In this document: piece by piece, positions 1,579 to 31,030 of the stretch | Position numbering within the stretch: the first letter of the stretch is position 1 | How the letters are laid out: each line of letters begins with the position of its first letter | NCBI GenBank assembly: GCA_965235115.1 | Contig: OZ249444.1 | Location: 25,606,001-25,670,000, forward strand | DNA: 64,000 nt | Direction: 5' to 3' | Source of the DNA: Laetmonice hystrix | Lineage: Eukaryota | Notes under the pieces: generated by a model | Seen by the model: only the letters and a program-made list of their open reading frames with translations | Database searches by the model: none | What the model was told of the DNA's origin: nothing | Made by a program: the position numbers and the translations under genes

Positions 1579-1721
1579 CAAAGGGAGGGTCGTCTCGAGC
1601 ATGTTTGGATTGAACCTTTCGAGCAGAAAGAAATCACTTTGGGTGATTGCGACTCCATACCCGCCACTGAAACCTCAGATATATCTGTTGGAAATATCGA
1701 ACTTTTCTTTGCCAGTCGTTT

Positions 1722-4005: not shown

Positions 4006-5347
4006 GAGACTCTGCGGTGAGGACAGTGTTCAGAGAGCCCTGCCCGTGCCCAGACTCTGCGGTGAGGACAGTGTTCAGAGAGCCCTGTCCAAGCCCAGAC
4101 TGTGGTGAGGACAGTGTTCAGAGAGCCCTGTCCAAGCCCAGACTCTGCAGTGAGGACAGTGTTCGGAGAGCCCTGTCCGAGCCCAGACTCTGCAGTGAGG
4201 ACAGTGTTCGGAGAGCCCTGCCCGAGCCCAGACTGTGGTGAGGACAGTGTTCGGAGAGCCCTGCCCGAGCCCAGACTCCGCGGTGAGGACAGTGTTCAGA
4301 GAGCCCTGTCCGAGCCCAGACTGTGGTGAGGACAGTGTTCAGAGAGCCCTGTCTGTGTTCAGAGAGCCCTGTCCGAGCCCAGACTCTGCGGTGAGGACAG
4401 TGTTCAGAGAGCCCTGCCCGAGCCCAGACTCTGCGGTGAGGACAGTGTTCAGAGAGCCCTGTCCAAGCCCAGACTCTGCAGTGAGGACAGTGTTCGGAGA
4501 GCCCTGCCCGAGCCCAGACTCTGCAGTGAGGACAGTGTTCGGAGAGCCCTGTCCGAGCCCAGACTGTGGTGAGGACAGTGTTCAGAGAGCCCTGTCCGAG
4601 CCCAGACTGTGGTGAGGACAGTGTTCGGAGAGCCCTGCCCGAGCCCAGACTCTGCAGTGAGGACAGTGTTCGGAGAGCCTTGTCCGTGTTCGGAGAGCCC
4701 TGCCCGAGCCCAGACTCTGCAGTGAGGACAGTGTTCGGAGAGCCCTGCCCGTGCCCAGACTCTGCAGTGAGGACAGTGTTCGGAGAGCCCTGCCCGAGCC
4801 CAGACTCTGCAGTGAGGACAGTGTTCGGAGAGCCCTGCCCGAGCCCAGACTCTGCGGTGAGGACAGTGTTCGGAGAGCCCTGTCCGTGTTCGGAGAGCCC
4901 TGCCCGAGCCCAGACTCTGCGGTGAGGACAGTGTTCGGAGAGCCCTGTCCGTGTTCGGAGAGCCCTGCCCGAGCCCAGACTCTGCGGTGAGGACAGTGTT
5001 TGGAGAGCCCTGTCCGAGCCCAGACTCTGCGGTGAGGACAGTGTTCAGAGAGCCCTGTCCAAGCCCAGACTATGCGGTGAGGACAGTGTTCAGAGGGCCC
5101 TGTCCGAGCCCAGACTATGGTGAGGACAGTGCTCCGAGAGCCCTGTCCGTGTTCGGAGAGCCCTGTCCGAGCCCAGACTCTGCGGTGAGGACAGTGTTCA
5201 GAGAGCCCTGTCCAAGCCCAGACTGTGGTGAGGCCAGTGTTCAGAGAGCCCTGTCCGTGTTCAGAGAGCCCTGTCCGAGCCCAGACTCTGCAGTGAGGAC
5301 AGTGTTCGGAGAGCCCTGTCCGAGCCCAGACTCTGCGGTGAGGACAG
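4006..5347. repeat. Minisatellite, 45-bp unit (43-bp variants and 19-bp sub-duplications), about 30 units
   Basis: Unit GTGAGGACAGTGTTCRGAGAGCCCTGYCCGAGCCCAGACTCTGCR. Confidence 0.95.
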
Positions 5348-5685
5348 ATGTCGTTTGAGGTCGACTCAGTGAGGCTGAACTAATGAGGACCTCAGGTTTG
5401 AGCAGGGTTCACCAAGCCGATAATTTAAAGGTTCCCCCGGAGACAACAGCTAGACCAGTAATGTTAACGGTGAGACAGGAGGCGGGGCTGGGGTCATTTA
5501 CAGACACGGGAACCCTGCTCCGGACCGTCACCATAAAAGGCATTTCTTGGGACGCTCTTGGACCTCAAGGTCAATGATGTCAAAGGCCATGATGTTGTCA
5601 AAGACCAAACCGGATATTGTCAATGCTTAGGGCCACACCGAACATAGATTTGAACACTGCTCTTTGGCCAGTTTGGGGACTACAG

Positions 5686-5949
5686 GGCCCGTTTTTTTTG
5701 TTTACTTTTCCACCGTGAGCAAGGGTGAGCTGAGCTGAGCAAGGGTGAGCATGAGCTCATTCTCACCGTTTTCGTGTTTTTTTGGTTGCTTTTTTTCCAT
5801 GAGGCGTGCTCGTGGTGAGCAAGCTCACGGAAAAACACCCCAAAAAAACGAAAACAGTGAGCAAAACGGTGAGCATGAGCTTCTGCTCACCCTTGCTCAG
5901 CTCAGCTCACCCTTGCTCACGGTGGAAAAGTAAACAAAAAAACCGGGCC
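5686..5949. mobile_element. MITE, 264 bp, about 70-bp terminal inverted repeats starting GGCCCG, CAG target-site duplication
   Basis: GGCCCGTTTTTTTTGTTTACTTTTCCACCGTGAGCAAGGGTGAGCTGAGC at the left end and its reverse complement at the right end; CAG at 5683-5685 and 5950-5952; second copy at 30847. Confidence 0.9.
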
Positions 5950-8900: not shown

Positions 8901-9160
8901 ATTTGAACCATGACGTTGACGTCAGTGTAAAGTCCAGAGTGAGTTCCAGACATGGGCCGTACTGTGCCCAGAGATCTTGACATCCTAGTACCACCATCTC
9001 TGCTGTGCCTGTAGGCGAGTTGCAGTATGTGATGGAATGTTGAGATACACAGGACAGTTTAACATGGAGACGTTTAACCCAGCAGACCGTCCCTGGTATA
9101 GTCAATGTTGACATTAATACATGATTGATGAAACAAGCTAAATCAGGGCCTTGATTTATG

Positions 9161-10562
9161 TTGGAAGGTACAAACATCTGAAAGACGATCAGAACTCGGT
9201 GGTTGAATGAACCGTGTATTGTGGGTTTTAGGTTGGAAGGTACAAACATCTGAAAGACGATCAGAACTCGGTGGTTGAATGAACCGTGTATTGTGGGATT
9301 CAGGTTGGAAGGTACAAACATCTGAAAGACGATCAGAACTCGGTGTAGATGTTGAATGAACCGTGTATTGTGGGATTCAGGTTGGAAGGTACAAACATCT
9401 GAAAGACGATCAGAACTCGGTGGTTGAATGAACCGTGTATTGTGGGATTCATGTTGGAAGGTACAAACATCTGAAAGACGATCAGAACTCGGTGGTTGAA
9501 TGAACCGTGTATTGTGGGATTCAGGTTGGAAGGTACAGACATCTGAAAGACGATCAGAACTCGGTGGTTGAATGAACCGTGTATTGTGGGATTCAGGTTG
9601 GAAGGTACAGACATCTGAAAGACGATCAGAACTCGGTGGTTGAATGAACCGTGTATTGTGGGATTCAGGTTGGAAGGTACAGACATCTGAAAGACGATCA
9701 GAACTCGGTGGTTGAATGAACCGTGTATTGTGGGATTCAGGTTGGAAGGTACAAACATCTGAAAGACGATCAGAACTCGGTGTAGATGTTGAATGAACCG
9801 TGCATTGTGGGATTCAGGTTGGAAGGTACAAACATCTGAAAGACGATCAGAACTCGGTGTAGATGTTGAATGAACCGTGTATTGTGGGATTCAGGTTGGA
9901 AGGTACAAACATCTGAAAGACGATCAGAACTCGGTGTAGATGTTGAATGAACCGTGCATTGTGGGATTCAGGTTGGAAGGTACAAACATCTGAAAGACGA
10001 TCAGAACTCGGTGGTTGAATGAACCGTGTATTGTGGGATTCAGGTTGGAAGGTACAAACATCTGAAAGACGATCAGAACTTGCTGTAGATGTTGAATGAA
10101 CCGTGTATTGTGGGATTCAGGTTGGAAGGTACAAACATCTGAAAGACGATCAGAACTCGGTGGTTGAATGAACCGTGTATTGTGGGATTCAGGTTGGAAG
10201 GTACAAACATCTGAAAGACGATCAGAACTCGGTGGTTGAATGAACCGTGTATTGTGGGATTCAGGTTGGAAGGTACAAACATCTGAAAGACGATCAGAAC
10301 TCGGTGGTTGAATGAACCGTGTATTGTGGGATTCAGGTTGGAAGGTACAAACATCTGAAAGACGATCAGAACTCGGTGGTTGAATGAACCGTGTATTGTG
10401 GGATTCAGGTTGGAAGGTACAAACATCTGAAAGACGATCAGAACTCGGTGGTTGAATGAACCGTGTATTGTGGGTTTTAGGTTGGAAGGTACAAACATCT
10501 GAAAGACGATCAGAACTCGGTGGTTGAATGAACCGTGTATTGTGGGATTCAGGTTGGAAGGT
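9161..10562. repeat. Minisatellite, 72-bp unit (77-bp variant), about 19 copies
   Basis: Unit GGTTGGAAGGTACAAACATCTGAAAGACGATCAGAACTCGGTGGTTGAATGAACCGTGTATTGTGGGATTCA. Confidence 0.97.
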
Positions 10563-10768
10563 GGAAGAGGTGATGTGGGGGTGCCGGTGTATGTATGCGG
10601 AGGGGGGGGGGGGGTCCCGAATTTCTTTATTTTCTGGGGATTCTTCCATGGGGGAACCCGGATTTACGTAACACTATATCTGAAGGGGGCCTTAGTCTAG
10701 CACGAAATACACACGATGTGATTGTGCGGGTGTGAGTCTGGCACCCAGTCTCGTTGGTCTGACCGTCT

Positions 10769-11545
10769 GACAGGGCAGTGCAGGTGACACAGCGATTTAC
10801 AGGGCAGTGCAGGTGACACAGCGATTTACAGGGCAGTGCAGGTGACACAGCGATTTACAGGGCAGTGCAGGTGACACAGCGATTTACAGGGCAGTGCAGG
10901 TGACACAGCGATTTACAGGGCAGTGCAGGTGACAGCCATTTACAGGGCAGTGCAGGTGACAGTGATGTACAGGGCAGTGCAGGTGACAGCGATTTACAGG
11001 GCAGTGAAGGTGACAGTGATGTACAGGGCAGTGCAGGTGACACAGTGATTTACAGGGCAGTGCAGGTGACACAGCGATTTACAGGGCAGTGCAGGTGACA
11101 GCCATTTACAGGGCAGTGCAGGTGACAACCATTTACAGGGCAGTGCAGGTGACAACCATTTACAGGGCAGTGCAGGTGACAACCATTTACAGGGCAGTGC
11201 AGGTGACAGCCATTTACAGGGCAGTGCAGGGGACAACCATTTACAGGGCAGTGGAGGTGACAACCATTTACAGGGCAGTGCAGGTGACAGCCATTCACAG
11301 GGCAGTACAGGGGACACAGCCATTTACAGGGCAGTGCAGGTGACAACCATTTACAGGGCAGTGCAGGTGACAGCCATTTACAGGGCAGTGCAGGGGACAC
11401 AGCCCTTTACAGGACAGTGCAGGTGACAGCCATTTACAGGGCAGTGCAGGTGACTACCATTTACAGGGCAGTGCAGGTGACAGCCATTTACAGGGCAGTG
11501 CAGGGGACACAGCCATTTACAGGACAGTGCAGGTGACACAGCCAT
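10769..11545. repeat. Minisatellite, 27/29-bp unit ACAGGGCAGTGCAGGTGAC(AC)AGCSATTT
   Basis: Visible directly. Confidence 0.95.
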
Positions 11546-12221
11546 TTCACAGCCAACCACAGTCAGACAGGAGTCAATCTATCTCAGCTTTAATTTGGAC
11601 AAGACTTGCTTGAAGGGAGAGTTTGTCATAAAAAATAACACTCCTCTCGCTCTTGTGAGGAACATCAGATAGTAGATGGGGAAGAAGGTATGTCTGAAGA
11701 CTTTGAAATAAAAAGAAAACACAGAAAATAGCTGGCAGGTGAGTCAACTTTTTGTGTGTCCAGGTGTTGGACTGGCAGCGTGTCTGGGATGTGAGGGGGG
11801 AGGGGATGTCTCCACAAAATGGAGGGAGGGGGGGGGGGTTAAAAACACTAAACATCTACCCCTCGCCCTAACATGAACATTCACCCGTACTCCTATACTG
11901 GCGGGAGTATTACTATGAGATGACTAGGGCCACAGCCGGGGTACTCATTCTGTATGCGGGACACGAACGACGTGCCCAGATCCCGGGGTGGTGGGAATGC
12001 TTGGGGTAAATAACTCTGGGGGTGACTTCAGTGGGGGTTGGGGGGTGACGACAGCAGTCAGGGGGTATGGACGCCCAGACCTGTCATGGCTCAAAGACAT
12101 TCGTGTGCTCATCTCAACACCTATTCCAATGAAAATCTCATTCATCTTAATAAATCGTTCAACTTCGTGAAAATCCCATGCTAAAGGGATTTTACAATCA
12201 TTATCCATGCAAGGAGGGCCA

Positions 12222-12530
12222 GGATGTCTCCACGACCCATACAATGAGGGCAGGTATCTCCCCACTCTATATGAGGGCCGAGTATCTCCACGACCCATAC
12301 AATGAGGGCAGGTATCTCCCCACTCTATACAATGAGGGCCGAGTATCTCCACGACCCATACAATGAGGGCAGGTATCTCCCCACTCTATATGAGGGCCGA
12401 GTATCTCCACGACCCATACAATGAGGGCAGGTATCTCCCCACTCTATACAATGAGGGCCGAGTATCTCCACGACCCATACAATGAGGGCAGGTATCTCCC
12501 CACTCTATACAATGAGGGCCGAGTATCTCC
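12222..12530. repeat. Minisatellite of alternating ~30-bp subunits (ATGAGGGCCGAGTATCTCC / ATGAGGGCAGGTATCTCC)
   Basis: Visible directly. Confidence 0.9.
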
Positions 12531-12876
12531 CATTCCCACTCACAATCCTCATACAGACATTCGAATACTGGTGAGAATTTTGTGTAAAATAAATGTTCCA
12601 TTCCACTGAAGGTTACCGGGGTACTGTGATAAAAGTGGCAGTCACTTTGATCTAAAAAAAGGTCTGAACCTCTGCCAACAACAGTTTGACTAGGACGGAG
12701 TGGAGTAAACATTTTTCTGCATCAGTTACGTTTGTGCAAGCAATGACTGTCACAAAAAAAGCCCAGTAAAAAAAAAGTTTTAGAAGGAGAAGGGGAGGAT
12801 GGGAGTTGGCAAAGTTGTGTCAGTGTTAGAACGCCATGCCAGTTTTTGTTATTCTCCGATCAGGTCTGATGGTTGA

Positions 12877-13157
12877 CAGATGTATGGTTTATGGTGACCT
12901 GCATGATGACTTGTAAACGTTGTGGTGGTGATTGCAGGTCGTAGCCAACAGATGTATCGGTTTATGGTGACCTGCATGATGACTTGTAAACGTTGTGGTG
13001 GTGATTGCAGGTCGTAGCCAACAGATGTATGGTTTACGGTCACCTGCATGACGACTTGTAAACGTTGTGGTGGTGATTGCAGGTCGTAGCCAACAGATGT
13101 ATGGTTTATGGTACCCTGCATGACGACTTGTAAACGTTGTGGTGGTGACTACAGGTC
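12877..13157. repeat. Tandem repeat, 72-bp unit, about 4 copies
   Basis: GATGTATGGTTTATGGTGACCTGCATGATGACTTGTAAACGTTGTGGTGG repeated. Confidence 0.9.
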
Positions 13158-13381
13158 GGCTGAGGCTAAAGTCTGCCTTCACATGAATACTTCAAACATT
13201 AACCGTCATGTATATTGAACCAGAGATTATTATGAATGTATGTCACAGTTAGTTGGCATGACTTCAGGAGCGTTAACTTAAGAGTAAATTTTATTATGAA
13301 AATATCAGTTTAACATAAACATGGATATAAAAGTGTAAAATATTATTCTTAATTTTTCTTCTTGTCTTTCTCTGTTTTCAG

Positions 13382-16300
13382 AAATTATGCAAACAAGCAA
13401 GTTTACAGTAGTAGTCCAACTGATCGGCGGCTGACTAAACTCCTGAGGGCATATTTTAATCGCTTTGGATTCGATAGCGTAGAAGTGAGGAAAGCAAATG
13501 AAAAATATGACGTCTTGCTCTCACTACCCGATGTTGACAATCCTAACAGTGTGAAAATTGTAGGAAGAAATGGCCAAGTCCTGCATGAAGACACAAGTCT
13601 CGTTCTGCCAAAAATCCCACCAAATATACCGCCAGAGGGCGCTCATAGCCAGCAGTTTGGTGCCCACAAGGTGGAGCCACCTGTAGATACCATCCCGGAC
13701 AGTGCCAGCGGACAACCTGACGAAGGAATTACACCGGGATTAGCTGATGAGGGAATTATACCAGGATTACCGAATACTACACCAGATGGCGCTGAGAGTG
13801 CCGAGGAGCGGAGGAAGCGGGAATCATCTCGAGAGATTGATGAGGATATTGCGAAGGAGATCATAGATTTTGACAACATTCCATTAGAGATGATCCAGCA
13901 GTTGAAAAAGCTTGCCCAGAGGCCGATGCCTACACCAATACCTGATCTACCACCCTTCGTGGCTTACTCCGCGGCAGGCCAAGTATCGGTAAGTCTGAAT
14001 TAGTATCCGTTATGCTGTGCCATCGAACACCGAGGTACTCTGTGTGAGAATACAATACTTCCCTGAGCAGGCCGGTCATTTGCCAGGTTTTCAGGATTTC
14101 TTTACCTGGAAAGCTTAAAGGCCTGCCCCGAATATATAAGTTATTATAACGATCAAATTGTGCCCTACCAGTATGAATCAGCTTTACTCATTATCTGTAA
14201 CTTGGAGTTCAAAAAATTACCAGTGAAAAAAAGCCAAACCAAAACGCGCAGAGACCAGTGGCACCTCAACTAGTCACTAATAATTCCCTGAGCAGGTCAT
14301 AGTAACGGCTAGACCGTCGAACCATGCCTATATACGAGGGCCCCGTTACCATATATAGGCATGGTTCCATGTCTAATCAACGACGCGATGTCTCAAAATG
14401 TAAACTCTGCAGGCTGTAGGGTTCTGTATCGGAGACCTACTAGTTCATTTTTCTCACACACGACGAGTGCATGATCATCATTATGTATACATGTACATCA
14501 TATGGCTAGGGGTGAAAGGTATCTTGTTTATATATTTGGGGTGGACCCTGTGTGATCAATTTTCAGGAGTTTCAATCAAGAAATGACCAAATTGGGGAAA
14601 TCCTATCCTTGATGACACCCCTCAGCTTTTAACACAGAATTATTTTGAAAGTCAGACCAGTATTTGAGTAAGCACTCACACACAAATTTATTTTGAAAGT
14701 CAGACCGTAAGCACTCACACACGGGTTGAGAAGAGTGGGTGTTTCATAGAATGGAGGAAGGAGTGCCGATTGTGTGCTTTATGTATAACAAGAATTCCAT
14801 GGTAATGACCTGGATTTCTGAGACTCACTACAGAATATTACAAGATTCTCGAATCATAGGCTTATTCTAGTATGATTCTAGTATGATTCTAGTATGATTC
14901 TAGTATGATTCTCGAATCATAGGCTTATTCTAGTATGATTCTAGTATGATTCCAGTATGATTCTCGAATCATAGGCTTGTTCTAGTAAATGTGAAAATAA
15001 TCAGTTTTGTATTCCATGGAATGACAATGAGTGCAAGAAGTGAATTCACATTGATTTTATTACAATCCTGGTGAATTAAATATTATCTTGGGGTAGAACA
15101 AAAATACGGGATCAGTTTACACAAGCACATGACTCCGAAATGTTGTTCCACCCAGTATACATGTCTGCCCAGTGCGCGTGTACTGAGGCTGGGAGCTGGT
15201 ATCAGGTTACACTGACTGGTGGATCCATTAATCGCTGCCAATGCTATCATAATAATAGTACCAGCACGGTGGCAAACATTCATGTTTTTAAAACCTTTTT
15301 ATTTTGTGAATGTGCAATCGGAATAATTCTATGTTCGTTAACTTCGTTCCAAAAGAAAGGTAGTGTCGTGTCTGGAAGTGCATTTGATGCCATTTAAAGT
15401 ATTTAGTTAAATATATAAACCAATTTGAAGTTGGGAATGTAGCAATGTTAGGGTTTACGGTATCACAAGGCATTATGACTGGGCCAGGGGCCGGCTTGGT
15501 GAAGTACAGCTGTACCCGGCGTCTCACCCCCCAATATAACCTACCCGCAGTAAACGGGGTGCTTCTCCCCCGGAACTTGTGCCATATCTCTCCCCCTGAA
15601 CCTGTGCCATATCTCTCCCCAGAACTTGTGCTATATCTCTCCCCCAGAACTTGTGCTATATCTCTGCCCCAGAACCTGTGCTATATCTCTCCCCCAGAAC
15701 TTGTGCTATATCTCTCCCCAGAACCTGTGCTATATATCTCTCCCCTTGAACCTGTGCTATATCTCTCCCCCTGAACCTGTGCTATATATCTCTCCCCCAG
15801 AACCTGTGCTATATCTCTCCCCCTGAACCTGTGTCATATCTCTGCCCCAGAACCTGTGCCATATCTCTCCCCCTGAACCTGTGTCATATCTCTGCCCCAG
15901 AACTTGTGCCATATCTCTCCCCCAGAACTTGTGTCATATCTCTGCCCCAGAACTTGTGCCATATCTCTCCCCCCAGAACTTGTGCTATATCTCTCCCCCC
16001 AGAACTTGTGCTATATCTCTCCCCCAGAACTTGTGCTATATCTCTCCCCCCCGAACTTGTGCCATATCTCTCCCCCAGAACGTGTGCCATATCTCTGCCC
16101 CAGAACTTGTGCCATATCTCTCCCCCTGAACCTGTGTCATATCTCTGCCCCAGAACTTGTGCCATATCTCTCCCCCCAGAACTTGTGCTATATCTCTCCC
16201 CCCAGAACTTGTGCTATATCTCTCCCCCAGAACTTGTGCTATATCTCTCCCCCCAGAACTTGTGCTATATCTCTCCCCCTGAACTCGTGCTATATCTCTC

Positions 16301-19300
16301 CCCCAGAACTCGTGCTATATCTCTCCCCCAGAACTTGTGCTATATCTCTCCCCCCAGAGCTTGTGCTATATCTCTCCCCCCAGAACTTGTGCTATATCTC
16401 TCCCCCAGAACTTGTGCTATATCTCTCCCCCCAGAACTTGTGCTATATCTCTCCCCCCAGAACTTGTGCTATATCTCTCCCCCAGAACTTGTGCTATATC
16501 TCTCCCCCCAGAACTTGTGCTATATCTCTCCCCCAGAACTTGTGCTATATCTCTCCCCCCAGAACTTGTGCTATATCTCTCCCCCAGAACTTGTGCCATA
16601 TCTCTCCCCCCAGAACTTGTGTCATATCTCTCCCCCAGAACTTGTGCCATATCTCTCCCCCTGAACCTGTGTCATATCTCTGCCCCAGAACTTGTGCCAT
16701 ATCTCTCCCCCTGAACCTGTGTCATATCTCTGCCCCAGAACTTGTGCCATATCTCTCCCCCCAGAACTTGTGCTATATCTCTCCCCCCAGAACTTGTGCT
16801 ATATCTCTCCCCCAGAACTTGTGCTATATCTCTCCCCCCAGAACTTGTGCTATATCTCTCCCCCTGAACTTGTGCTATATCTCTCCCCAGAACTCGTGCT
16901 ATATCTCTCCCCCAGAACTTGTGCTATATCTCTCCCCCCAGAACTTGTGCTATATCTATCCCCCCAGAACTTGTGCTATATCTCTCCCCCAGAACTTGTG
17001 CTATATCTCTCCCCCAGAACTTGTGCTATATCTCTCCCCCCAGAACTTGTGCTATATCTCTCCCCAGAACTTGTGCTATATGTCTCCCCCAGAACTTGTG
17101 CTATATCTCTCCCCCAGAACTTGTGCTATATCTCTCCCCCAGAACTTGTGCGATATGTCTCCCCCCAGAACTTGTGCTATATCTCTCCCCCTGAACTTGT
17201 GCTATCTCTCCCCCTGAACTTGTGCTATATCTTTCCCCCAGAACTTGTCAAGTTGTGCTATATCTCTCCCCCAGAACTTGTGCCATATCTCTCTCCTCTG
17301 AACTTCTGCCGTACCCCCCCCCCCCCCCCCCCAATTTGTGAGCAGTGATAATGGGGTTAGGCCAGGAAGAGCCCACCCCCTGGGCAGACAATTACAGGGT
17401 GCCCACGCTCGGTGACATATTAACATAAACGTCACCAAGCAAAGTGACAGTTGACACGCAAGGTGTGTCACCCCTGCAGGTATACGCTGCGTGTAGTGTG
17501 GCAGGCAGACTGCACTGATGCTATCTCTACAAGGGTCCACTCATGGAATGTATTGTACAGCATCTTCGGTAAGGAGGCAGGCTATCCATAAACCCTGGCC
17601 CTGGGTGCATGTTAACATTCAGTGTACCTGTGGAATACCAGGTGAAACATTTCAAATCGTTGACTTTGATTTAAAGACAAAAATGACCTATTTTTAAAAT
17701 TCTGCTGTGCATAGTTTAAGAACAATGTCACATTTAATGCCCCGCCATGAGGACTATACAGCTATTCTCTTTACGGATATGCTGAAAGTAACTGCATCTG
17801 AAAGATATGGCACAATTAGCAAGTGCCAGGATGACCTTTAGCTTAATGGTGGAATGTTCCGGAGAAATCATGTGTATCTTTTATAACATCTAGGAAAGCA
17901 TGGATTCCGGGGGACGTCTCGTCTCGGAAGGATGTGTGTAGGGAGGAGGGTCCATTGTCCTGCTCGACCACCAAAGGTTTCTTTACAGTGGCGGTGGTCG
18001 AGTGGATGCTAGATGCGACTGGGTGCAGCAATCTTGGGGCCGGGGTTCAGGGAGAGGACTTTGTGTCTGAGGTCACTGACGGCAGTGGCCAAGGTAATGT
18101 CCACATATCAGTGGTAGCAGTAGTCGCCAGGTTGACTGTAACTGTAAGGTCATGTCCACATATCAGTGGTAGCAGTAGTCGCCAGGTTGACTACCTGTAA
18201 CTGTAAGGTCATGTCCACATATCAGTGGTAGCAGTAGTCGCCAGGTTGACTGTAACTGTAAGGTCATGTCCACATATCAGTGGTAGCAGTAGTCGCCAGG
18301 TTGACTACCTGTAACTGTAAGGTCATGTCCACATATCAGTGGTAGCAGTAGTCGCCAGGTTGACTACCTGTAACTGTAAGGTCATGTCCACATATCAGTG
18401 GTAGCAGTAGTCGCCAGGTTGACTACCTGTAACTGTAAGGTCATGTCCACATATCAGTGGTAGCAGTAGTCGCCAGGTTGACTACCTGTAACTGTCAGGT
18501 CATGTCCACATATCAGTGGTAGCAGTAGTCGCCAGGTTGACTGTAACTGTAAGGTCATGTCCACATATCAGTGGTAGCAGTAGTCGCCAGGTTGACTACC
18601 TGTAACTGTAAGGTCATGTCCACATATCAGTGGTAGCAGTAGTCGCCAGGTTGACTGTAACTGTAAGGTCATGTCCACATATCAGTGGTAGCAGTAGTCG
18701 CCAGGTTGACTACCTGTAACTGTAAGGTCATGTCCACATATCAGTGGTAGCAGTAGTCGCCAGGTTGACTGTAACTGTAAGGTCATGTCCACATATCAGT
18801 GGTAGCAGTAGTCGCCAGGTTGACTGTAACTGTAAGGTCATGTCCACATATCAGTGGTAGCAGTAGTCGCCAGGTTGACTACCTGTAACTGTAAGGTCAT
18901 GTCCACATATCAGTGGTAGCAGTAGTCGCCAGGTTGACTGTAACTGTAAGGTCATGTCCACATATCAGTGGTAGCAGTAGTCGCCAGGTTGACTGTAACT
19001 GTAAGGTCATGTCCACATATCAGTGGTAGCAGTAGTCGCCAGGTTGACTACCTGTAACTGTAAGGTCATGTCCACATATCAGTGGTAGCAGTAGTCGCCA
19101 GGTTGACTGTAACTGTAAGGTCATGTCCACATATCAGTGGTAGCAGTAGTCGCCAGGTTGACTACCTGTAACTGTAAGGTCATGTCCACATATCAGTGGT
19201 AGCAGTAGTCGCCAGGTTGACTACCTGTAACTGTAAGGTCATGTCCACATATCAGTGGTAGCAGTAGTCGCCAGGTTGACTGTAACTGTAAGGTCATGTC

Positions 19301-22300
19301 CACATATCAGTGGTAGCAGTAGTCGCCAGGTTGACTACCTGTAACTGTAAGGTCATGTCCACATATCAGTGGTAGCAGTAGTCGCCAGGTTGACTACCTG
19401 TAACTGTAAGGTCATGTCCACATATCAGTGGTAGCAGTAGTCGCCAGGTTGACTGTAACTGTAAGGTCATGTCCACATATCAGTGGTAGCAGTAGTCGCC
19501 AGGTTGACTACCTGTAACTGTAAGGTCATGTCCACATATCAGTGGTAGCAGTAGTCGCCAGGTTGACTACCTGTAACTGTAAGGTCATGTCCACATATCA
19601 GTGGTAGCAGTAGTCGTCAGGTTGACTACCTGTAACTGTCAGGTCATGTCCACATATCAGTGGTAGCAGTAGTCGCCAGGTTGACTACCTGTAACTGTAA
19701 GGTCATGTCCACATATCAGTGGTAGCAGTAGTCGCCAGGTTGACTGTAACTGTAAGGTCATGTCCACATATCAGTGGTAGCAGTAGTCGCCAGGTTGACT
19801 GTAACTGTAAGGTCATGTCCACATATCAGTGGTAGCAGTAGTCGCCAGGTTGACTGTAACTGTAAGGTCATGTCCACATATCAGTGGTAGCAGTAGTCGT
19901 CAGGTTGACTACCTGTAACTGTAAGGTCATGTCCACATATCAGTGGTAGCAGTAGTCGCCAGGTTGACTGTAACTGTAAGGTCATGTCCACATATCAGTG
20001 GTAGCAGTAGTCGCCAGGTTGACTGTAACTGTAAGGTCATGTCCACATATCAGTGGTAGGAGTAGTCGCCAGGTTGACTGTAACTGTAAGGTCATGTCCA
20101 CATATCAGTGGTAGCAGTAGTCGCCAGGTTGACTACCTGTAACTGTAAGGTCATGTCCACATATCAGTGGTAGCAGTAGTCGCCAGGTTGACTGTAACTG
20201 TAAGGTCATGTCCACATATCAGTGGTAGCAGTAGTCGCCAGGTTGACTACCTGTAACTGTAAGGTCATGTCCACATATCAGTGGTAGCAGTAGTCGCCAG
20301 GTTGACTGTAACTGTAAGGTCATGTCCACATATCAGTGGTAGAAGTAGTCGCCAGGTTGACTACCTGTAACTGTAAGGTATGTTCGTCCGTTGTCACCTG
20401 GCGTGTTTACCTGGCGGCTGTGACCATCTTCCAAGTGTGTGTGGTACATATCTTACCTGAGTGACGGTCAAACCATTCCTAGCATCATGTACGCCGCCTA
20501 CCGGCGACCACAGAAATCTAGGGGTAGGAATAACGTAGGGAAACACAGGAGGTGAATGTTCAGTCGGTGGATGGGTGGGGTGGTATGGGGTGGGAGGTTT
20601 TGTTGAACCAGAAAGATGAGGAGGTGATGTAATACCAAATGAAGAAACAAACTCGGAGTAAGTCGTATCTGGTGAATGAGTAAAGGTTTCATTTTACGGT
20701 AACTGTGGGTGTTTGATGTGACTGTAATAATATAGAAATACTCCAGATCCCACACCCCTTGGACCACAGTGTCAGTAGAAGCCCCAGCTGAGGGGAGCTC
20801 CCCAGGTTGAGAGTAAAGGTTCGAGTTGACGGTAACTGTGGGTGTTTGATGTGACTGTAATAATATAGAAATACTCCAGATCCCACACCCCTTGGACCAC
20901 AGTAGAAGCCCCAGCTGAGGGGAGCTCCCCAGGTGGAGAGTAAAGGTTTCAGCTGACGGTAACTGTGGGTGTTTGATGTGACTGTAATAATATAGAAATA
21001 CTCCAGATCCCACACCCCTTGGACCACAGTAGAAGCCCCAGCTGAGGGGAGCTCCCCAGGTTGAGAGTAAAGGTTTCAGCTGACGGTAACTGTGGGTGTT
21101 TGATGTGACTGTAATAATATAGAAATACTCCAGATCCCACACCCCTTGGACCACAGTAGAAGCCCTAGCTGAGGGGAGCTCCCCAGGTTGAGAGTAAAGG
21201 TTTCAGCTGACGGTAACTGTGGGTGTTTGATGTGACTGTAATAATATAGAAATACTCCAGATCCCACACCCCTTGGACCACAGTAGAAGCCCCAGCTGAG
21301 GGGAGCTCCCCATGAGAGTTTTAAAGGGGGCAGAGGCCCCCTTGCCCCCCCCCCTGTTCTCCAGGCCGTGTGAGTTCCCGGAATGATGTGAGTCTGAGTG
21401 TGAGAGAAATATTAGTCGTACTGTCACCGCTATAAACACGAGCGGAGGAGGCGGGATGTGGGGGAATGTTGGCAGTGTGGGGAGTTACCTGGCCAGCATC
21501 GCGTGTTAATAGTCGAGGTAAGGTGACAGATGATGGATCTGATCTCACCATGCACAGATTGGGGCGAAAAATTTAAATAATAAAAATAACGTGGATGGGA
21601 AACTTTTCAAGTTCAAGCATTCCACAGTTTGTTGAAACATTTAGGAATTTCAGTGTTATGAGTGTGCGAATTCTAGGGAACAGTCTAATTAGGTCCTTGG
21701 ATTTTTATGAGTGTGCGAATCCTAGGGAACAGTCTAATTAGGTCCTTTTAGATTTAAACATGAATTGTGACATGAAAAGTGTAATTTTATGTTGAGAGCA
21801 GACTCTCCCGACACACCACTGATACTGCTTGTGTTGTGAACAGTAGCACAGGTACATGATTGAAGAGCTTTAAGGCAACATTTACATAATTTCCTAAATA
21901 TTCATCAAGTATTTTACACCTGCGCCTTGCTCATTGAATATTCATGATATAAGAAAGACGGGACGGCTACAAATTTTGTTATTATTTTCTTTTTATGACT
22001 TTCAAAGCGTTTTTGTTCAGTAAACCTTGCCAATTATTGTCAAAGTCAAAGCCTGCCGATTCCAAAGCTCGACTCTTGCAGGTGGTATGTGGTGCCCCTG
22101 TACAAACTCTCCATGTTAGTCATGTCCGAACTCGGTGAGGGACTAGACTGTGGCCCGGGTCATTAGGCCGACTTTGTTACCTTTGATCAGATTCACCTAG
22201 TGGCCGCTTACAACAACATCAAACACCCCAGGAGATTGCCATCGCTTCAGGCCTGTAATTAAAGATGTTTGTCATGCCAGTAAGGCACGAAGTGAACTCA

Positions 22301-25300
22301 GTGTTCTGAAATAGACGGAGTGATACCTTAGCATACACAAGTAGTTTGATGGTGGCTGCTAGGTATAATTATCACAACTTAGTCACTCACTGGGGCAACC
22401 GGCTCTTGGAAGTTCTTCATAAATATAAATTCTTCACACTTTATAATTGGCAGCAGGTTGAGACTGGCCAGAGATTTAGATGTGTATCTAGAGAGAACAG
22501 ACTCTGGGTTTAAACCGCCACTGATTGTATATGGCATCAGTAATCCCACAGTTGTATTTATAAGTAAGCATTAGGTTTTAGACCGGATCTTATCTTCAAC
22601 AGGTGCCATTGTTCCGATGAAATTGTTTAATTGGATTGTTCTCCCTTTGTTGATTGAGTTGGAGGGTGGGTGGGGGGAGTGGAATATACATGTGAGCTAT
22701 TTACACATTGGTTCACCAACTTTCAAAGTCCTTAAATCTGTGGCACAATGACCATACCATGACTGTTTTATACCATGATCTGGCACAGATGGGAACCATG
22801 GTATAAGTTTAACCTTCACTTTATTAAAAACATTTCCTGGAAGCGTGAATGTGTTGCGTTATCCCTCCTCTAACCAAGGCCAGTGTTTGTAACCTGTTGA
22901 CGACGTCAGGAGTTTCTCTCAGCCGGTGGCTCCCTCTGTTGTAGGGCGAGATAATCTACGTGAACTATGGCGGGCCTGAGGAGTACGGCATTCTACAGGA
23001 GGCGGGAATTCCCGTCAGGGGGCGCCTCGCTATGGCCAGGCTGGGCGGCCTCACCGTTCAGGAGAAGGTAAGAAGACTTCACTTAGAATATTTATTTGGC
23101 CAGTTTGATTTAACACGTAGTTTAGTGTCACTTTAGGAGACAATTTTTTGGGTAACATAAGTGGATGATCTGAACTACTAGTATGCCCTTTAGATTAAGG
23201 AAACTGCAGCCCCCCCCCCCCCCCCACTTCAGGGACTTGTACAATTAATATATTCATGTTCACTGGTGGTGAGACTGGCCCCGTTCCGCAGATGTTAAAC
23301 AACTGTTTCCATCGCCTCCAGGTTCACCAAGCCCAGGAGAATGGTATCATCGGCCTACTCCTGTACCTCGACCCTGGAGATAACTTCATCACTCCATTCA
23401 AGGGTTGTACCAACACCCCGCTCTGGGCGAACGCCAACGATGACGGCAATGGTGACCCTCTCACTCCTAACTTCCCGGCCATTGGTGAGATTGTTTGAAA
23501 CAGTTGGGGTGTGATTTAAGTGTGCTGAGGATCTGAAGTGTTGAAAAGGTGCAGCGACATGCTTATATTCGGTCACATTTTTTAAATATTTTTTGATTAA
23601 ATTGAAAAAAAATACAACAAATTATGTAAAAAAGAGAGAGAGAAAGAGAAATGTAAAATATTGGTTATGTTAAAATTCCAGACGGGATGACGAGACTGAA
23701 CGTTCAGGACGCTCCCCTTCCCAAGATTCCTGTTCAGACAGTGTCGTGCGCGTTCGCCGCCAAGATCCTGGAGGCGATGACCGGCGAGGTTGCGCCAGAG
23801 AGATGGACGGGCGGTATCAATGTCACTTACCACATTGGCAGGAAGACGGACAGTAAGTTCTGTTTTACACGCCCTGGGTGTTATAGGTGTAATACACTCT
23901 AAATCTCTTAGTGAAAGGATATGGTGTCCAGCATATTTTGTATCGTAGCAAAATGAAGGAATTGGGGAAAAGAACTTTAAAAAGGGGTTTTCAATTGAAA
24001 GTAAATAAAAATACATAGCATTGCAAGGAAATTGGAGAATACAATGGATGCCGTCACTAGAGAGTCAGTTTGTCACGAGGACAGAGGAGTTCACGAATGT
24101 TTGACATTTCGGTCCAGAATAAACAGTAATGGTGTCAGGTAGAGAGCACGACAGTTAATGACGTCATACACTCAGCTTACAATGTTCACTGACGTCATCA
24201 TTGTAGCTGGGACGTTGCCATGGGAACTAAAGATGGAAGTACGTAACAAACAGGAGAGACGCCCAGTGTATAATGTGATAGCCACACTGACAGGTCAGGA
24301 AGATCCCGGTAAGTAAAGTTCAGAGAGTGAACACATATATTCTTCTAAACATATGTGGGGGCGGAGGGGAATGTGAGAATATTTTTATTTTATAGAAATG
24401 ATTGAGTTCTTCCTGTGTCAGATCAAACTGACGGATGAAGTGATACTTCTGTTCCAGATAATTACGTTCTTATCGGAGCAAATCGCAACAGTTTTGGACT
24501 TGGTCCGTTTGGTGGAATCTTTGGCACGTCAGCTCTCGTGGAATTGGGCCGAAACCTTGGGATGTTAGTGAACAGAGAACAGTGGCGCCCCAAGCGGACG
24601 ATTAAGTTATGTTCGTGGGGAGGTGGAGACTATGGCGACATTGGATTGGTAGAATACTTACAGGTAAAATCATTCTGAGCATCGCAACGTTTGGTATTTG
24701 GTGGATTAATACTTCTATGAAATAGGGTGAAAAGACCCATGTCCACATAGGCGATTGCCCCTGCGACGTCCATGCGATTCTAACATTATTTGACTGTGAT
24801 TTTGAGGTTAAAGGATGGAACCCATTTCCAGAAACAGGGAAGGCCATCCCAGAAAAATTGCAGAGTGAAATTCCACCACGAAATCAAAAATCGCAAGTCA
24901 AATCACCTTAGTGGACATGGGCGTTAAGATTTAGGGGCTGGAGGGATTAGTGTTTTGGGGAGGTCTGGGGATCTGGGCAGGCGGGTATGGTTGGGTTTTG
25001 GCTTTGTAAGAATAGTGAGGGATCTTTAGGTATTTCCACCAAGTTATGGAGAAGTTTTCATGGAGGATATACTGAGCTCGAACAAACCTCTCCGAGAAAT
25101 TCAAAAAGTTTGTACCACGACTCGAGACATTTCAACACTTTGATACTTGATGATATTTTTGGCCGTTAATATTTTTAGAAAGATTACAACATTGATTAAC
25201 TAAAAAGACTAGTTCCTAGTTTGTAATGTTCCTTGTAACATGTTGATGTAATGTTTTGATTCAGGAGTACGGCGATGTAGTGAATGGTCGTATTGTGTCG

Positions 25301-27645
25301 TACATCAACCTTGACCAACCTGTAATGGGAAACCACACACTGACAGTCGAGTCGAGCCCTACTCTCCACGATATCATCTATAACGCTGCAGAAAGGGTCA
25401 GTACGAGTTACTTCTTCCAAGTCTCAATCAAAATACAAAATACAGCTGAATTCTTCTGACCAGGATTTCCAAAGAGGCCACTCGTATTTGGGGTAAAAAT
25501 GGACGATTCGAAGAAGTGAACTGTTTATTTAGAAAGCGGATCTTAGGAGAAAGTGCTTCCAATGAAAGCAGGGTTTTAATTCTCTTTACTGAAAACTGAA
25601 CGGTCCATGTTTCCTGCCCCCTCCTGACTTCAGGCCAGTAATTGAAGCCCATTTTTTGTCCAATTCTTTGTGACAATGTTCTGGTAACTTGCTGCAGGTA
25701 CCCAGTCCAGATGACCGTCAGTCCATGCTGTACGACACATGGTATGACCGGTTGAGGGAACAGTTGCCCGGTCAGAAGCCGACCATCCTTGAACCTATGG
25801 ACCCACGCCTCATGTCTCTCCCTAACCCATTCTTCAAGAAACTCGGCGTTCCCACAACCCACATCCAGTACATGCCTAGAACCAACAAGGTAGGTCGTCT
25901 TCCTGATATATACCGAACTCAAACAGTGTGTTAAGTGATCAATATCTGTGGCTATTTCTATTAATTAAAAAAGCCAGGTGTGGCCCTTCTAAGTATATCA
26001 GAAATGATCAATCTCCTACAAGAACTGAAGAGGGTGAGATATCAATAATAAATCGTGAAGAATACAAAGTATGGTGTGATCTAATAGGCTAATGTTAGCC
26101 ACCTGGTGGGATATATGTTAACTACAAGATTTACCTATATTTTGGCATACATTAGGTTGAGTTACAAGTTTGATGGTGGGTGTGTATCTCAAGTGTGATT
26201 TGATTCTGTGACAGGCCTTTGACATGTCGCTAATAAACGCATACATTAGGTTGAGTTACAAGTTTGATGGTGGGTGTGTAACTCAAGTGTGATTTGATTC
26301 TGTAACAGGCCTTTGACATGTCGCTAATAAAGGATGAGATGGCACACCACTGGCGATACCACACGGCGGTCAACCGGATGTCAGGCCTACTCGCCCTCTC
26401 ATTGGCTGACGCTTCCATACTGCAGTACGATCTGGTAGCCATGGCAACCAGTCTGCAGGGGAAAGTTTCTGATTGGTTGAGGAACAACAAATATGTACAG
26501 AATGATACAGCAGGTGAGAAGGAAGGGGAAACCATGGAAACAGGCTGGATCCCTCTCTGCGGGACTTCTTCTATAACTACAGACCAGATTATGAGCCACT
26601 GATTATATGTCTCAGAGATATGGCAATTAATAAGGAAAATTATCTTTCGTCAGAGAAAAATAACATAACATACAAATGATTGGCGTTATTTATTTTGCGA
26701 TCAAATCAAGGCCCTAATATGGGGTCATTGAATTAGCTATTATAATAATGTTATCAGTGGAGAGCTGTCATGTTAATTTAATCTAATGGTTGAATTGATG
26801 TTCTTGGCAGCTTCACTGAAGGAAGCGACGGGATCTCTGGTGACGGCTACCAACTCTGTGCACAGCTTTATCATGAACCAGGTTGACTTTGATCTGTATT
26901 CGGAGAAACGGCTAATCAACGAACGACTTGTCAAGTCAGAAAATCTCATGGCCAAAACCTTCTTTCACTTGAAGGTGCTGAGGTAAGTCGAGTTCAGTGT
27001 GGCACAGTTTGTGTTTTCATACCGTATGTACCGTACTGTTTGTGAGTTTAATGGTGAGAGGGTGGGAGGAGAGAGGGTGCAGTGTGTATTGACAAGTTTT
27101 GTGGCAGGTTTTGGGTCACACGTGTGTGCACTGTCAGATTTTTGTTCTAGACCTATGTAAGTTACTGGTAATCAAGTCTCAGTTAAATAATTAATTTGAT
27201 ACCGTGAAATCAGAAATGTTTTAATCTGACATTATAAAAAATGTTATATTTTCTAATCCTTTGATTTTGATCTGTTTTCAGTGTGAAGCTCCTTGTGATC
27301 AACATGTTGTCAGTGAGCCAGGCCGAGCTTCCCGCCAAGAGACGCCAGTATCAGGTGGAGCTGAACAAGCTGCAGGGGCAGCGTTCGCAGCTCGTGACGG
27401 AACGTAAACGTATCATGGAAGAGGAGCAGGACTCCCCAGAGAAACGATTAAAACTACGGAGACTGAATGAGGGACAGAAACAGCTCATCCAGCCAATAAA
27501 AGACCTCAAGTATGAGCTGTTTAAGATCCAGCAACAGGAACTGACTTATGAGATACTTTCAGTGGCCATCTTTACACCGGACGATTTCTGTACACTGTTA
27601 CACTCACTGCGGTCTGCCAAGGAAGTCCTCCGTACCGAGTTATGA
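13382..27645 (+). CDS. M28B family (glutamate carboxypeptidase II / NAALADase / transferrin receptor-like) protein, predicted catalytically inactive; multi-exon, 5' exons not resolved
   Basis: Phase-compatible GT-AG exons read by hand: 13382-13988, 22945-23067, 23322-23484, 23682-23852, 24207-24308, 24458-24663, 25265-25396, 25698-25889, 26309-26513, 26811-26982, 27282-27645 (TGA). Family motifs: YDVLLSLP, PPFVAYS..GEIIYVNYG (PA domain), GNGDPLTP, LPKIPVQTVS, YNVIATLTG, WRPKRTIKLCSW, YINLD. Confidence 0.9.
14310..14375. other. Short hairpin / fold-back element
   Basis: GAACCATGCCTATATA...TATATAGGCATGGTTC forms a 16-bp perfect stem, with outer TAGAC/GTCTA pairing. Confidence 0.6.
15571..17304. 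repeat. Minisatellite, ~25-26-bp unit GAACTTGTGCTATATCTCTCCCCC(C)A, over 60 copies
   Basis: Visible directly; variable C-run; lies in the intron 13989-22944. Confidence 0.97.
18093..20378. repeat. Minisatellite with interspersed 55-bp and 59-bp variants, about 40 copies
   Basis: Unit GTAAGGTCATGTCCACATATCAGTGGTAGCAGTAGTCGCCAGGTTGACT(ACCT)GTAACT. Confidence 0.97.
20686..21312. repeat. Tandem repeat, 127-bp unit, about 5 copies
   Basis: Period is 127 (e.g. 20949 to 21076); the unit contains the palindrome GGGGAGCTCCCC. Confidence 0.93.
24736..24921. mobile_element. MITE-like element with short TIR CCCATGTCCAC..; inverted-orientation relative at 35401-35599
   Basis: CCATGTCCACATAGGCGATT pairs with AATCACCTTAGTGGACATGG; the internal GCGACGTCCATGCGATT recurs reverse-complemented near 35555. 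Confidence 0.75.
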
Positions 27646-28633
27646 TTGATACCTTGAGACGTGCCTGTCTCCATGAACTATTGGTGCCTTATTACGTATG
27701 TGGAGGTGATTGTGTTAGAGGTGAGGCCTGCACAGTTTGCTAGATTGATTTATTACGTATGTGGAGGTGATTGTGTTGGAGGTGAGGCCTGCACAGTTTG
27801 CTAGATTGATTTATTGATTGTGGTGTGAGTGAGTGTGTAACTGGGCTGAATGTGGGCGGGCAGAGATATTTTCATAGTTTGGTAAGAAACATTGTTTATA
27901 TTGATTGAGTGGAAGTTTTTACTGGCTTCCCATTCTCAGAGTATCCTAGGTAGAATAGTCATTGTCTGATAGTCCTGTCTACTTTGAAAAGGTTGTGATA
28001 TTGATATTATTCAGACAACGTTTGTGCCTGCTGTCCAGTAGAAAATAACCATGCGAGACAATTGCTTTGACTTGATGATCAGTGACGTCTTCTGATTAAA
28101 CTAATAGGAATATTTGGAAGTTCCTTTAGTGCCAGTCACTGTGAAGATAGTTTTGTGTAAATTTTTATTAGTTAATTTATATACGTGGTTACAATGAATG
28201 AAACAACCACTGATTAGTGTGATTTGTGAATCACTGAAAACCTGTATTGACTAATCATGACTTGGATGTTCTTTTCTGTAATTATCTTAGTTTTTTTTTC
28301 TCATTTCATGGATGACAACCTCTTTAGCGTCAAGATTAGAGTATATGTTTGCAGGTTTTGAAATGATTGTCGTTAACCCGTTGTCAGAACATGATATTAT
28401 GTGCCAAAGTGTATTGTGACACCTGTAAAGTTTAATATATCAGCCTTTCAGAGGAAAAATGTTTCAGAAAAAGCGTCTTGAGCTATTGATGACATTAGAT
28501 GGGTCGCTGAGAATAATGTTGACAGCACTGCACTGTTATAATACTACTAGGTATAACAGCCGTGATATGGGGTACTTCAGTAAGAAAGTGTAAGAAAACT
28601 AGTCTGAAGTATATGTATCTGACATATTATTGT

Positions 28634-29500
28634 GTGTGTGTATGCCTGGAATGATCCTGACAGGGTGTAACAGAGAGCTCCTCAGTCACGGTCGGTGTGT
28701 GTGTGTACGCCTGGAATGATCCTGACAGGGTGTAACAGATAGCTCCTCAGTCACGGTCGGTGTGTGTGTGTACGCCTGGAATGATCCTGACAGGGTGTAA
28801 CAGATAGCTCCTCAGTCACGGTCGGTGTGTGTGTACGCCTGGAATGATCCCGACAGGGTGTAACAGATAGCTCCTCAGTCACGGTCGGTGTGTGTGTGTA
28901 CGCCTGGAATGATCCTGACAGGGTGTAACAGATAGCTCCTCAGTCACGGTCGGTGTGTGTGTGTACGCCTGGAATGATTCTGACAGGGGGTCACAGATAG
29001 CTCCTCAGTCACGGTCGGTGTGTGTGTGTACGCCTGGAATGATCCTGACAGGGTGTAACAGATAGCTCCTCAGTCACGGTCGGTGTGTGTGTGTGTACGC
29101 CTGGAATGATCCTGACAGGGTGTAACAGATAGCTCCTCAGTCACGGTCGGTGTGTGTGTGTACGCCTGGAATGATCCTGACAGGGTGTAACAGATAGCTC
29201 CTCAGTCACGGTCAGTGTGTGTGTACGCCTGGAATGATCCTGACAGGGTGTAACAGATAGCTCCTCAGTCACGGTCGGTGTGTGTACGCCTGGAATGATC
29301 CTGACAGGGTGTAACAGATAGCTCCTCAGTCACGGTCGGTGTGTGTATGCCTGGAATGATCCTGACAGGGTGTAACAGATAGCTCCTCAGTCACGGTCGG
29401 TGTGTGTGTGTACGCCTGGAATGATCCTGACAGGGTGTAACAGATAGCTCCTCAGTCACGGTCAGTGTGTGTACGCCTGGAATGATCCTGACAGGGTGTA
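28634..29500. repeat. Minisatellite, 61-67-bp unit with variable (TG)n, about 13 copies
   Basis: Unit ACGCCTGGAATGATCCTGACAGGGTGTAACAGATAGCTCCTCAGTCACGGTCG(GT)n. Confidence 0.95.
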
Positions 29501-30846
29501 GTCAAGGTCGGTGTGTGTTTCTAGGCCTGGAATGTGTACAGGCGGAAATCGCTAACATAGCACAAAGCTAAGATGTCATATTCCGCATGATTTCTGGATT
29601 GTTAAACATGGTTTTTCAGTTAAATCGATTTGGAAACATTCTTTCCATGAACATATTTCAAACAAAATGGCTCAATTTTGTCTTTTTAAGACTTCTTTTT
29701 TTCCATGTAGTGGGGATTGCTGTGCAGACCTCCATATTTCACAGATAGATTTGACTGGATAAGATTCGTGACCTGTCCATTGAAGTACAGTATAATTATG
29801 CAATAATTATATACGAAAAAGATAGCTTTTTCATAATCGTTAAGGATTATGACACGGAAGTATACATGATTGTAAATAGATAATTAGGGTGTAAATGCCA
29901 TGATAATTGATTAGATAGTGTAAATTATGTGCAGTTATAAGTGAAGGGAAGTCGGGCAGTAGACTGGACTTAAGACCTAGGCAGTTCGGAGTCCAGTCGT
30001 CAACCGTTGGTTAACATGATGGCGACCTTAGTGGGAGCTACTGTCACCCTTTATACACGCCAAGGTAAAGTCGTAATGTACCAAGAAACGTTACACATCA
30101 GTTCATGATGCTGTTTTCATGAAGCCTGGACACACTAAAGTATGTGACCTCATTGCTTGTGTCACCATTCTTGGATTGACTTCTAGTGAACCGATCGAGC
30201 CCGATCAAGACAATGTCATGAAGAAAGTGTCTGTTGTATTCCAATAAAAAATTTAGGTTTCCTGATTTGTACTGAAGTTTTCGCAGTTCATTTTTATTTT
30301 TACTTTTTTCAATCTCCTTACCCCCCCCCCCCTCCCTCCCCCATCTCGTCGTGTCTTTCTCTCAGTCTCTTCCTCTGTCTCTTTGACGGACAGAAAGGTT
30401 TGCATTTATTAGAGTCATTGAAATGAGATAATCGAAGACTCTGAGCCGCAACTCATTCATTCCGGGAGACAGCTGCAACTTGGAACAGTTTCCGGTGGTG
30501 CTCATCAAGGAAACCCTACACTACACTACACTTGATCAATGCTACAATCAATGGGCATGAGCTCATCCCCCTTCATGGTCGTCATGTGATTCTGGAAAAC
30601 CCATCAGAAAACAAACCTATGTCATAGTTGGGGGTAGGCTAACCCAAGAATCGATACAACATGGGAGGCGAGCTGAAACCATGGGAGGCGGGCTGAAACC
30701 ATGGGAGGCGGGCTGAAACCATGGGAGGCTGGCTGAAACCATGAACCATGAAACCAGATATTGCATAACTAAAGGGATAACTTGGCCGGCTGAGAGCAAG
30801 AATATTGTACATGTGTATCTGCTAAATGGTTTAATGGAGCATTCTG

Positions 30847-31030
30847 GGCCCGGTTTTTTTGTTTATCTTTCCACCGTGAGCAAGGGTGAGCTGAGCTGGA
30901 CAAGGGTGAGCATGAGCTCATTCTCACAGTTTTCGTGTTTTTTGGGTTGCTTTTTTCCATAAGGCGTGCTCATGGTGAGCAAGCTCGCGGAAAAACACCC
31001 CCAAAAAACGAAAACAGTGAGCAAAACAGT
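30847..31030. mobile_element. Truncated copy of the 5686-5949 MITE (right TIR missing)
   Basis: Colinear with 5686 to about 5870; preceded by CTG at 30844-30846. Confidence 0.85.

Follow-up and report, generated by a model that had tools for sequence, protein, structure and literature searches.

A gene of at least 11 exons for a member of the peptidase subfamily M28B lies on the plus strand at positions 13382-27645 of a 64,000-nucleotide stretch of the Laetmonice hystrix genome (contig OZ249444.1, C10:25606001-25670000, hereafter the window; the genome comprises 627 Mb in 35 contigs). The coding sequence is unbroken for 812 codons and ends with a stop codon at 27643-27645. The encoded protein is predicted to be a catalytically dead homologue of glutamate carboxypeptidase II (GCPII), the substitutions at its metal site resembling those of the transferrin receptor (TfR). 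An earlier note made from the sequence had placed such a protein at 24458-26513; the peptides quoted from that span were all found in frame on the plus strand in exons bordered by AG and GT, although the span covers only four of the exons and not the whole gene.

The stretch is present in four sequencing runs, three of DNA and one RNA-like run (X4). The latter was treated as RNA because GT..AG joints, obtained for eight introns, were seen in it alone and because it showed no depth across most introns. Contigs of X4 confirmed the junctions 23067|23322, 23852|24207, ~24308|24458, 24663|25265, 25396|25698, 26513|26811 and 26982|27282. One X4 contig connects 26807-26980 with 27280-28094, and in X4 the last exon with approximately 750 nt of 3' untranslated region (UTR) is linked to the exon of the helical domain; the UTR extends to at least 28400. 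The exon 13382-13988 was added to the gene model based on the finding that a loose end (171 nt) of an X4 contig at 22944 is an exact match to 13958-13987. The junction 23484|23682 was bridged by an X4 contig with GT instead of AC, the ends assigned by the aligner being non-canonical and the reading frame continuous, a result that gives Ile-Gly-Gly compared to Ile-Asp-Gly at the canonical junction of the reference. The mismatch reflects either a pair of neighboring transitions in the individual from which the RNA was obtained or non-canonical splicing displaced by 2 nt.

The PA, M28 and helical blocks of the M28B layout are all alignable in the window gene, with the PA domain inserted in the peptidase-like domain. 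In exon 13382-13988, sequence for the N-terminal portion of the peptidase-like domain (..LLRAYFNRFGFDSVEV..YDVLLSLP..) is followed by an insert of approximately 100 residues and then by ..PPFVAYSAAGQVS. The insert, rich in Pro, Gly and acidic residues (13650-13930; ..PPNIPPEGAHSQQF..GITPGLADEGIIPGLP..EERRKRESSREIDEDIAKEII..), is located between the first strands of the peptidase domain and the PA domain and is specific to the window gene, with no counterpart in relatives. Alignment of the helical domain extends as far as the family does. Exon 27282-27645 adds a charged coiled-coil-like insert of approximately 55 residues, after which come the final helix (..TLLHSLRSAKEVLRTEL) and the stop codon. 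No exons encoding a transmembrane helix or cytoplasmic tail were found upstream (window 1-13381) by tblastn and a hydropathy scan, the sole candidate of which, a transmembrane-like open reading frame at 7490-7711, was unconvincing as an N-terminal exon and was rejected. Features of the gene and of its paralogues are collected in Table 1.

Table 1. Exons of the window gene (window coordinates), the tandem duplication within it, and further M28B genes of the same genome (coordinates on contigs C3 and C30).
Feature	Position	Strand	Evidence or characteristic residues
Most upstream exon found	13382..13988	+	AG 13380-81, GT 13989-90; X4 loose-end match; tblastn P0024 120-174
Exon, start of PA (apical) domain, GEIIYVNYGGPEEY..	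22945..23067	+	X4 joint 23065->23320, GT..AG; tblastn matches
Exon, PA domain, ..GIIGLLLYLDPGD..GDPLTPNFPAI	23322..23484	+	X4 joints; continuous reading frame
Exon, end of PA domain and return to peptidase-like domain	23682..23852	+	X4 joint 23852->24207, GT..AG
Exon, ..VYNVIATLTGQEDP	24207..24308	+	X4 joints at both ends (23852->24207, ~24308->24458)
Exon with degenerate metal site, GANRNSFGLGPFGGIFG, SWGGGDYG	24458..24663	+	HMMER to 4twe/TfR1/GCPII; MAFFT; X4 joint 24663|25265
Exon with YINLD	25265..25396	+	HMMER alignment to GCPII YINAD; X4 joints on either side
Exon ending ..IQYMPRTNK, directly before the site of the missing YPxYH (H553) loop	25698..25889	+	X4 joint 25396|25698; X4 contig end 25822; MAFFT
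94-bp tandem duplication, 2.0 copies, 97% identical	26145..26331	+	Tandem Repeats Finder (TRF); sequence comparison
Exon starting AFDMSLIKDEMAHHWRYH / AFDMSLIKDEMAHHWRYHTAV.., start of helical domain	26309..26513	+	Alignment with Solemya, Pinctada and Logan relatives and active enzymes; X4 joint 26513|26811
Exon, helical domain, ..KRLINERLVKSENLM.. aligned to ..RxxNDxLMxxEKxFL..	26811..26982	+	X4 contig; alignment
Last coding exon	27282..27645	+	X4 contig; alignment; Pfam hits weak, coiled-coil-type only
Active-type paralogue (C3a)	C3 near 10.19 Mb		H, D, EE, YPLYH (H553)
Paralogue with base replaced (C30)	C30:5794000-5805100, near 5.80 Mb		H, D, Q-E, D, H; HWDAQEQN, E424->Q
Second, different pseudo-peptidase (C3b)	C3:28941000-28952700, near 28.95 Mb		SSHHDAW, D387->S, SWAAGVYG (E424/E425 -> G/V), YPLYH kept

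Active M28B enzymes contain a binuclear zinc site ligated by H377, D387, E425, D453 and H553, with E424 as the catalytic base (GCPII numbering). For the 68-residue peptide encoded at 24460-24663, HMMER gave gap-free alignments with human NAALADL1 (4twe) at an E value of 3.8e-10 and with TfR1 at 1.7e-8; the peptide was also aligned to GCPIII and GCPII. The alignments revealed H377->N in the sequence GANRNSF, D387->G in GPFGGIFG, and E424->G together with E425->D in SWGGGDYG. The same table of substitutions was obtained with a 17-sequence MAFFT alignment, in which the window protein shows no His in the H553 column. These four replacements, and the TfR1 sequences GAQRDAW and SWSAGDFG given for comparison, agree with the manual alignment of the earlier note, as does the retention of D453, regarded as kept since YINLD aligns with YINAD of GCPII. 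The YPxYH(S/T)xxD loop is absent from the window protein, which has 12 residues fewer than active relatives at this location. The loss proposed for the H553 segment is thereby upheld, although as a 12-residue shortening plus replacement rather than a plain deletion. The HHWRYH encoded by exon 26309-26513 is the counterpart of ..FKYH.. in active enzymes and does not supply H553. Overall, substitution or loss has affected four of the five zinc ligands as well as the catalytic base, and D453 alone is intact, leaving one of three ligands for each zinc position, namely D453 and the Asp that replaces E425. The loss of the ligands, of the base E424 and of the H553 loop indicates, based on the established mechanism of GCPII, that the protein cannot form the binuclear zinc center or hydrolyze peptides. 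The assignment as a non-peptidase homologue within M28B, also the reading of the earlier note, is well supported as a prediction from sequence, with no missed exon found that restores the lost residues.

The site of the lost loop coincides with the junction 25889|26309, the sole intron for which no X4 contig was obtained, the contigs leaving 25823-26395 uncovered. One likely reason for the gap is that the 94-bp duplication breaks de Bruijn contigs; the DNA contigs also break at the duplication, where the k-mer depth is approximately doubled. The duplicated unit includes the acceptor site of exon 26309-26513 and the initial 23 nt of that exon, and use of the upstream acceptor copy (26214|26215) would give AFDMSLINAYIRLSYKFDGGCVTQV followed by a stop codon. 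An in-frame cassette of 63 or 72 nt (26215-26277 or 26215-26286) is formally possible. A search of the intron 25890-26308 revealed no open AG..GT piece resembling the H553 loop. The number of residues from xQY to HH[FW][RK]YH is 24 for the window gene (IQY to HHWRYH), 27 for Solemya, 24 for Pinctada and 22 for the transcript-like sequence P0101, which was derived from a 2.6-kb intron-free contig, compared to 36 for an active Haliotis enzyme. The absence of a loop-like piece in the intron and the corresponding shortening in Capitella and three bivalve-group relatives argue against a missed exon and support the junction indirectly.

Relatives were sought with the catalytic exon in an exhaustive representative search, which returned as near matches only fragments and a few full-length proteins; none of the closest contains H377 or E424. 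The named close relatives, all annotated "hypothetical protein", are from Capitella teleta (CAPTEDRAFT_222201), Solemya velum (ScPMuIL_017483) and Pinctada imbricata (FSP39_006739). The window protein grouped with that of Capitella with a support of 96 in the Shimodaira-Hasegawa-like approximate likelihood-ratio test (SH-aLRT) and, together with three bivalve-group sequences, formed one clade (support 99). The clade so far includes the annelid Capitella, the bivalves Solemya and Pinctada, P0101 and many fragments; H377, E424 and the H553 loop are gone in every member. It is a small, fast-evolving group of predicted dead M28B peptidases in annelids and bivalves. No description of this clade was found in the literature, and a 2024 review of pseudopeptidases does not include M28. 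Of three profiles, that built from active metazoan GCPII-like proteins gave the window protein its highest score (416 bits), followed by the profile of plant, fungal and bacterial members (344 bits) and that of TfR (253 bits). The predicted fold of the nearest full-length relative, that of Capitella (P0019), has a mean confidence (pLDDT) of 83.8 and a transmembrane helix at residues 48-72; N-terminal transmembrane helices were also found in the relatives P0003 and P0113. In Foldseek comparisons the Capitella model matched GCPII, GCPIII, NAALADL1, TfR1/2 and NAALADL2 about equally with 18-22% identity, the E value being approximately 1e-40 for GCPII, NAALADL1 and TfR. No match in the Protein Data Bank was obtained for exon 26309-26512 with phmmer.

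Two alternatives to a retained pseudo-enzyme concern the locus itself. If the ligand losses were mere decay, the gene would be a non-functional copy, consistent with its highly divergent sequence and long branch and with the recent duplication of the acceptor, which could cause mis-splicing. The frame is nevertheless intact over all of the exons with canonical splice sites, spliced transcripts are present in X4, and the eight exonic variants listed among contigs of the sample are all synonymous, a result indicating that the gene is under constraint. Furthermore, the nearest database fragment (P0001), 66% identical to the window protein, contains the same GANRNSF, SWGGGDYG and YINLD sequences, and the substitutions are conserved in the clade of annelids and bivalves. 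Expression and constraint identify the product as a pseudo-enzyme, and a decaying pseudogene is considered highly improbable. A protein that is still a metallopeptidase would have to use relocated ligands, for example the His pair of HHWRYH close to the deleted loop, or a missed exon at the junction 25889|26309, which no X4 contig spans. However, the ..YH of this sequence is also a conserved element of active enzymes without serving as a ligand there, Gly has replaced both the bridging Asp (D387) and the base (E424), the intron offers no exon candidate and the relatives share the shortened stretch. Retained peptidase activity is for these reasons extremely improbable.

The remaining alternatives concern kinship with known receptors and orphan members. 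Characteristic of TfR are an RGD sequence in the helical domain for transferrin binding, iron-responsive elements (IREs) in the 3' UTR of TfR1, and a type II topology with a YTRF-type internalization motif. Were the window protein a true member of the TfR lineage, sister or orthologous to TfR1/TfR2, the lineage would be older than vertebrates and the protein would be expected to function in the uptake of iron carriers (transferrin or ferritin). Joint trees placed the window clade beside vertebrate TfR1/TfR2 with SH-aLRT values of 99 and 96, and the groups have in common G-[DE] where the enzymes have E424-E425, a GA.R context at the position of H377, and YINLD. The literature also treats invertebrate NAALAD2-like proteins as possible stand-ins for TfR (PMC7034838, PMC12896564). 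Additional checks were made on the pairing because both groups are long branches. When TfR was left out, the window clade took a basal position among metazoan M28B sequences and fell outside a bilaterian clade supported at 98, whereas with the window clade left out TfR was nested in the bilaterian clade next to other degenerate sequences. Holding TfR in the bilaterian clade apart from the window clade cost only 3.7 log-likelihood units, a separation that was not rejected by the approximately unbiased (AU) test (p 0.44). The sisterhood obtained with a first quick tree was dropped after the long-branch extraction and AU test. The score on the TfR profile is in the mid-range for ordinary GCPII-like proteins and below that on the profile of active enzymes. 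The columns that contain ARGDF in TfR read ATGSL in the window protein, and RGD is present in none of five clade members in the helical domain alignment. No IRE was detected at E<=5 in 27600-31000, beyond which the 3' UTR may reach, and no Rfam family at the gathering score anywhere in the window. The loop lost by the clade is also kept by TfR as YPxL. The pairing with TfR in joint trees was not robust to extraction and the AU test. Of the two origins left open in the earlier note, relatedness to TfR is not borne out, and convergence is the better reading. The TfR-like G-D is interpreted as convergent on the basis of the extraction and AU tests, the lost loop, the absent RGD and the lack of an IRE. 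Membership in the TfR lineage is unlikely, and it is quite unlikely that the clade is the protostome counterpart of that lineage, a proposal in which the shift from GCPII to receptor preceded the protostome-deuterostome split and yielded an endocytic receptor for iron carriers. NAALADL2 is an orphan, "inactive" vertebrate member of M28B. Orthology of the window gene to NAALADL2 would agree with the incomplete zinc site of both and with the Foldseek match between the Capitella model and human NAALADL2 (Q58DX5, E 9.4e-39), a weak test. With 20% identity and rank 28 of 30, this match did not surpass those to GCPII, NAALADL1 or TfR, and NAALADL2 was not among the best 150 matches of the catalytic exon, results that make the orthology very unlikely.

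Overall, the locus likely holds a functional gene whose product is a catalytically dead M28B protein, and the gene is most likely an old duplicate kept for a non-enzymatic role. Catalysis would most likely have been lost independently of vertebrate TfR, with the duplicate retained while an active-type paralogue was kept in the same genome. By analogy with the family and the N-terminal transmembrane helices of relatives, the product is probably a dimeric, type II membrane-anchored protein that functions in binding, and a receptor function is conceivable. Several points weigh against this interpretation. The junction 25889|26309 is spanned by no contig of the RNA-like run, and the duplicated acceptor 94 bp upstream could yield a truncated product. 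Independent loss leans on a weakly settled deep phylogeny. Anchoring in the membrane is deduced from the relatives only, since no N-terminal exons could be located for the window gene, and the fold prediction was made on the Capitella relative, which stands in for the window protein. Finally, Pfam TFR_dimer was not detected at the window gene in a genome scan, and no meaningful Pfam hit was obtained with single exons, which are too short.

The window gene is accompanied by three further M28B genes in the genome, only one of which is of the active type (Table 1). The C30 paralogue, with all five metal ligands, may be a metal-binding but inactive protein as judged from its residues. Dozens of copies of the exon end encoding ..GDPLTPGYPSK, arranged in tandem and mostly 37 or 74 nt apart, are found in an intron of the active-type gene (C3:10192754-10194966); they resemble exon-end tandem copies noted previously at an exon for a nicotinic acetylcholine receptor (nAChR; window 57520-58383). 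Satellite arrays identified with TRF fill the 9-kb intron 13989-22944 of the window gene (among them 25-bp x69, 15564-17309; 59-bp x40, 18091-20383; 127-bp x5, 20678-21312) and the region upstream of the gene at 1-13381 (among them 72-bp x19, 9153-10562; 27-bp x28, 10770-11552). The intron segment 24740-24923 had a summed k-mer depth of approximately 64,000 compared to approximately 55 for flanking sequence in all three DNA runs, pointing to a very high-copy repeat; the segment was also present in the RNA-like run.

The recruitment of an enzyme fold for a receptor function is exemplified in textbook fashion by subfamily M28B, with TfR. The locus adds a previously undescribed group of dead M28B proteins from annelids and bivalves, with a structural signature of its own, namely a lost H553 loop and additional coiled-coil-like inserts. 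It would be a further case of the repeated loss of catalysis in the family, maintained by selection alongside an active paralogue. TfR1/2 are treated as vertebrate proteins, and NAALAD2-like proteins of sponges and a razor clam have been proposed as stand-ins for TfR (PMC7034838, PMC12896564). The window protein is a candidate for how invertebrates without a recognized TfR take up protein-bound iron, although no result presented here ties it to iron. Were it a true counterpart of the TfR lineage, TfR would be present in invertebrates, which are now thought to lack it. The sequences argue instead for a lineage-restricted new member of a well-known kind of pseudo-enzyme, the kinship with TfR or NAALADL2 being unsupported here.

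In comparison with known systems, the active invertebrate GCPII, NAALAD2-like and NAALADL1-like peptidases have the domain order, the GDPLTP of the PA domain and the WRP[KR]R sequence in common with the window protein and are its best overall profile match; however, H377, D387, E424, E425, D453 and H553 are intact in these enzymes whereas the window protein has only D453 and the conservative E425->D. TfR1 and TfR2 belong to the same three-domain fold family and have likewise lost H377, D387 and E424, with E425 replaced by Asp and D453 kept in YINLD. TfR1 matched the Capitella model with a Foldseek E value of approximately 1e-42 and 22% identity. TfR retains the loop that holds H553 in the enzymes, at which the window clade is shorter; unlike TfR, the window protein has neither the RGD nor an IRE and contains the coiled-coil-like and N-terminal inserts of approximately 55 and 100 residues. 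NAALADL2, with the M28B fold and annotated as inactive, is no closer to the Capitella model than any other member of the family. The proteins of Capitella, Solemya and Pinctada resemble the window protein in the GA[NS]R[NT]xF and SWGG.. sequences and the missing YPxYH loop, although they are only approximately 25-35% identical to it. The bivalve proteins differ in a Glu kept at position 425 (S-E) and, by alignment, an Asp at 387, and in the Capitella gene model even the HH.RYH stretch is missing.

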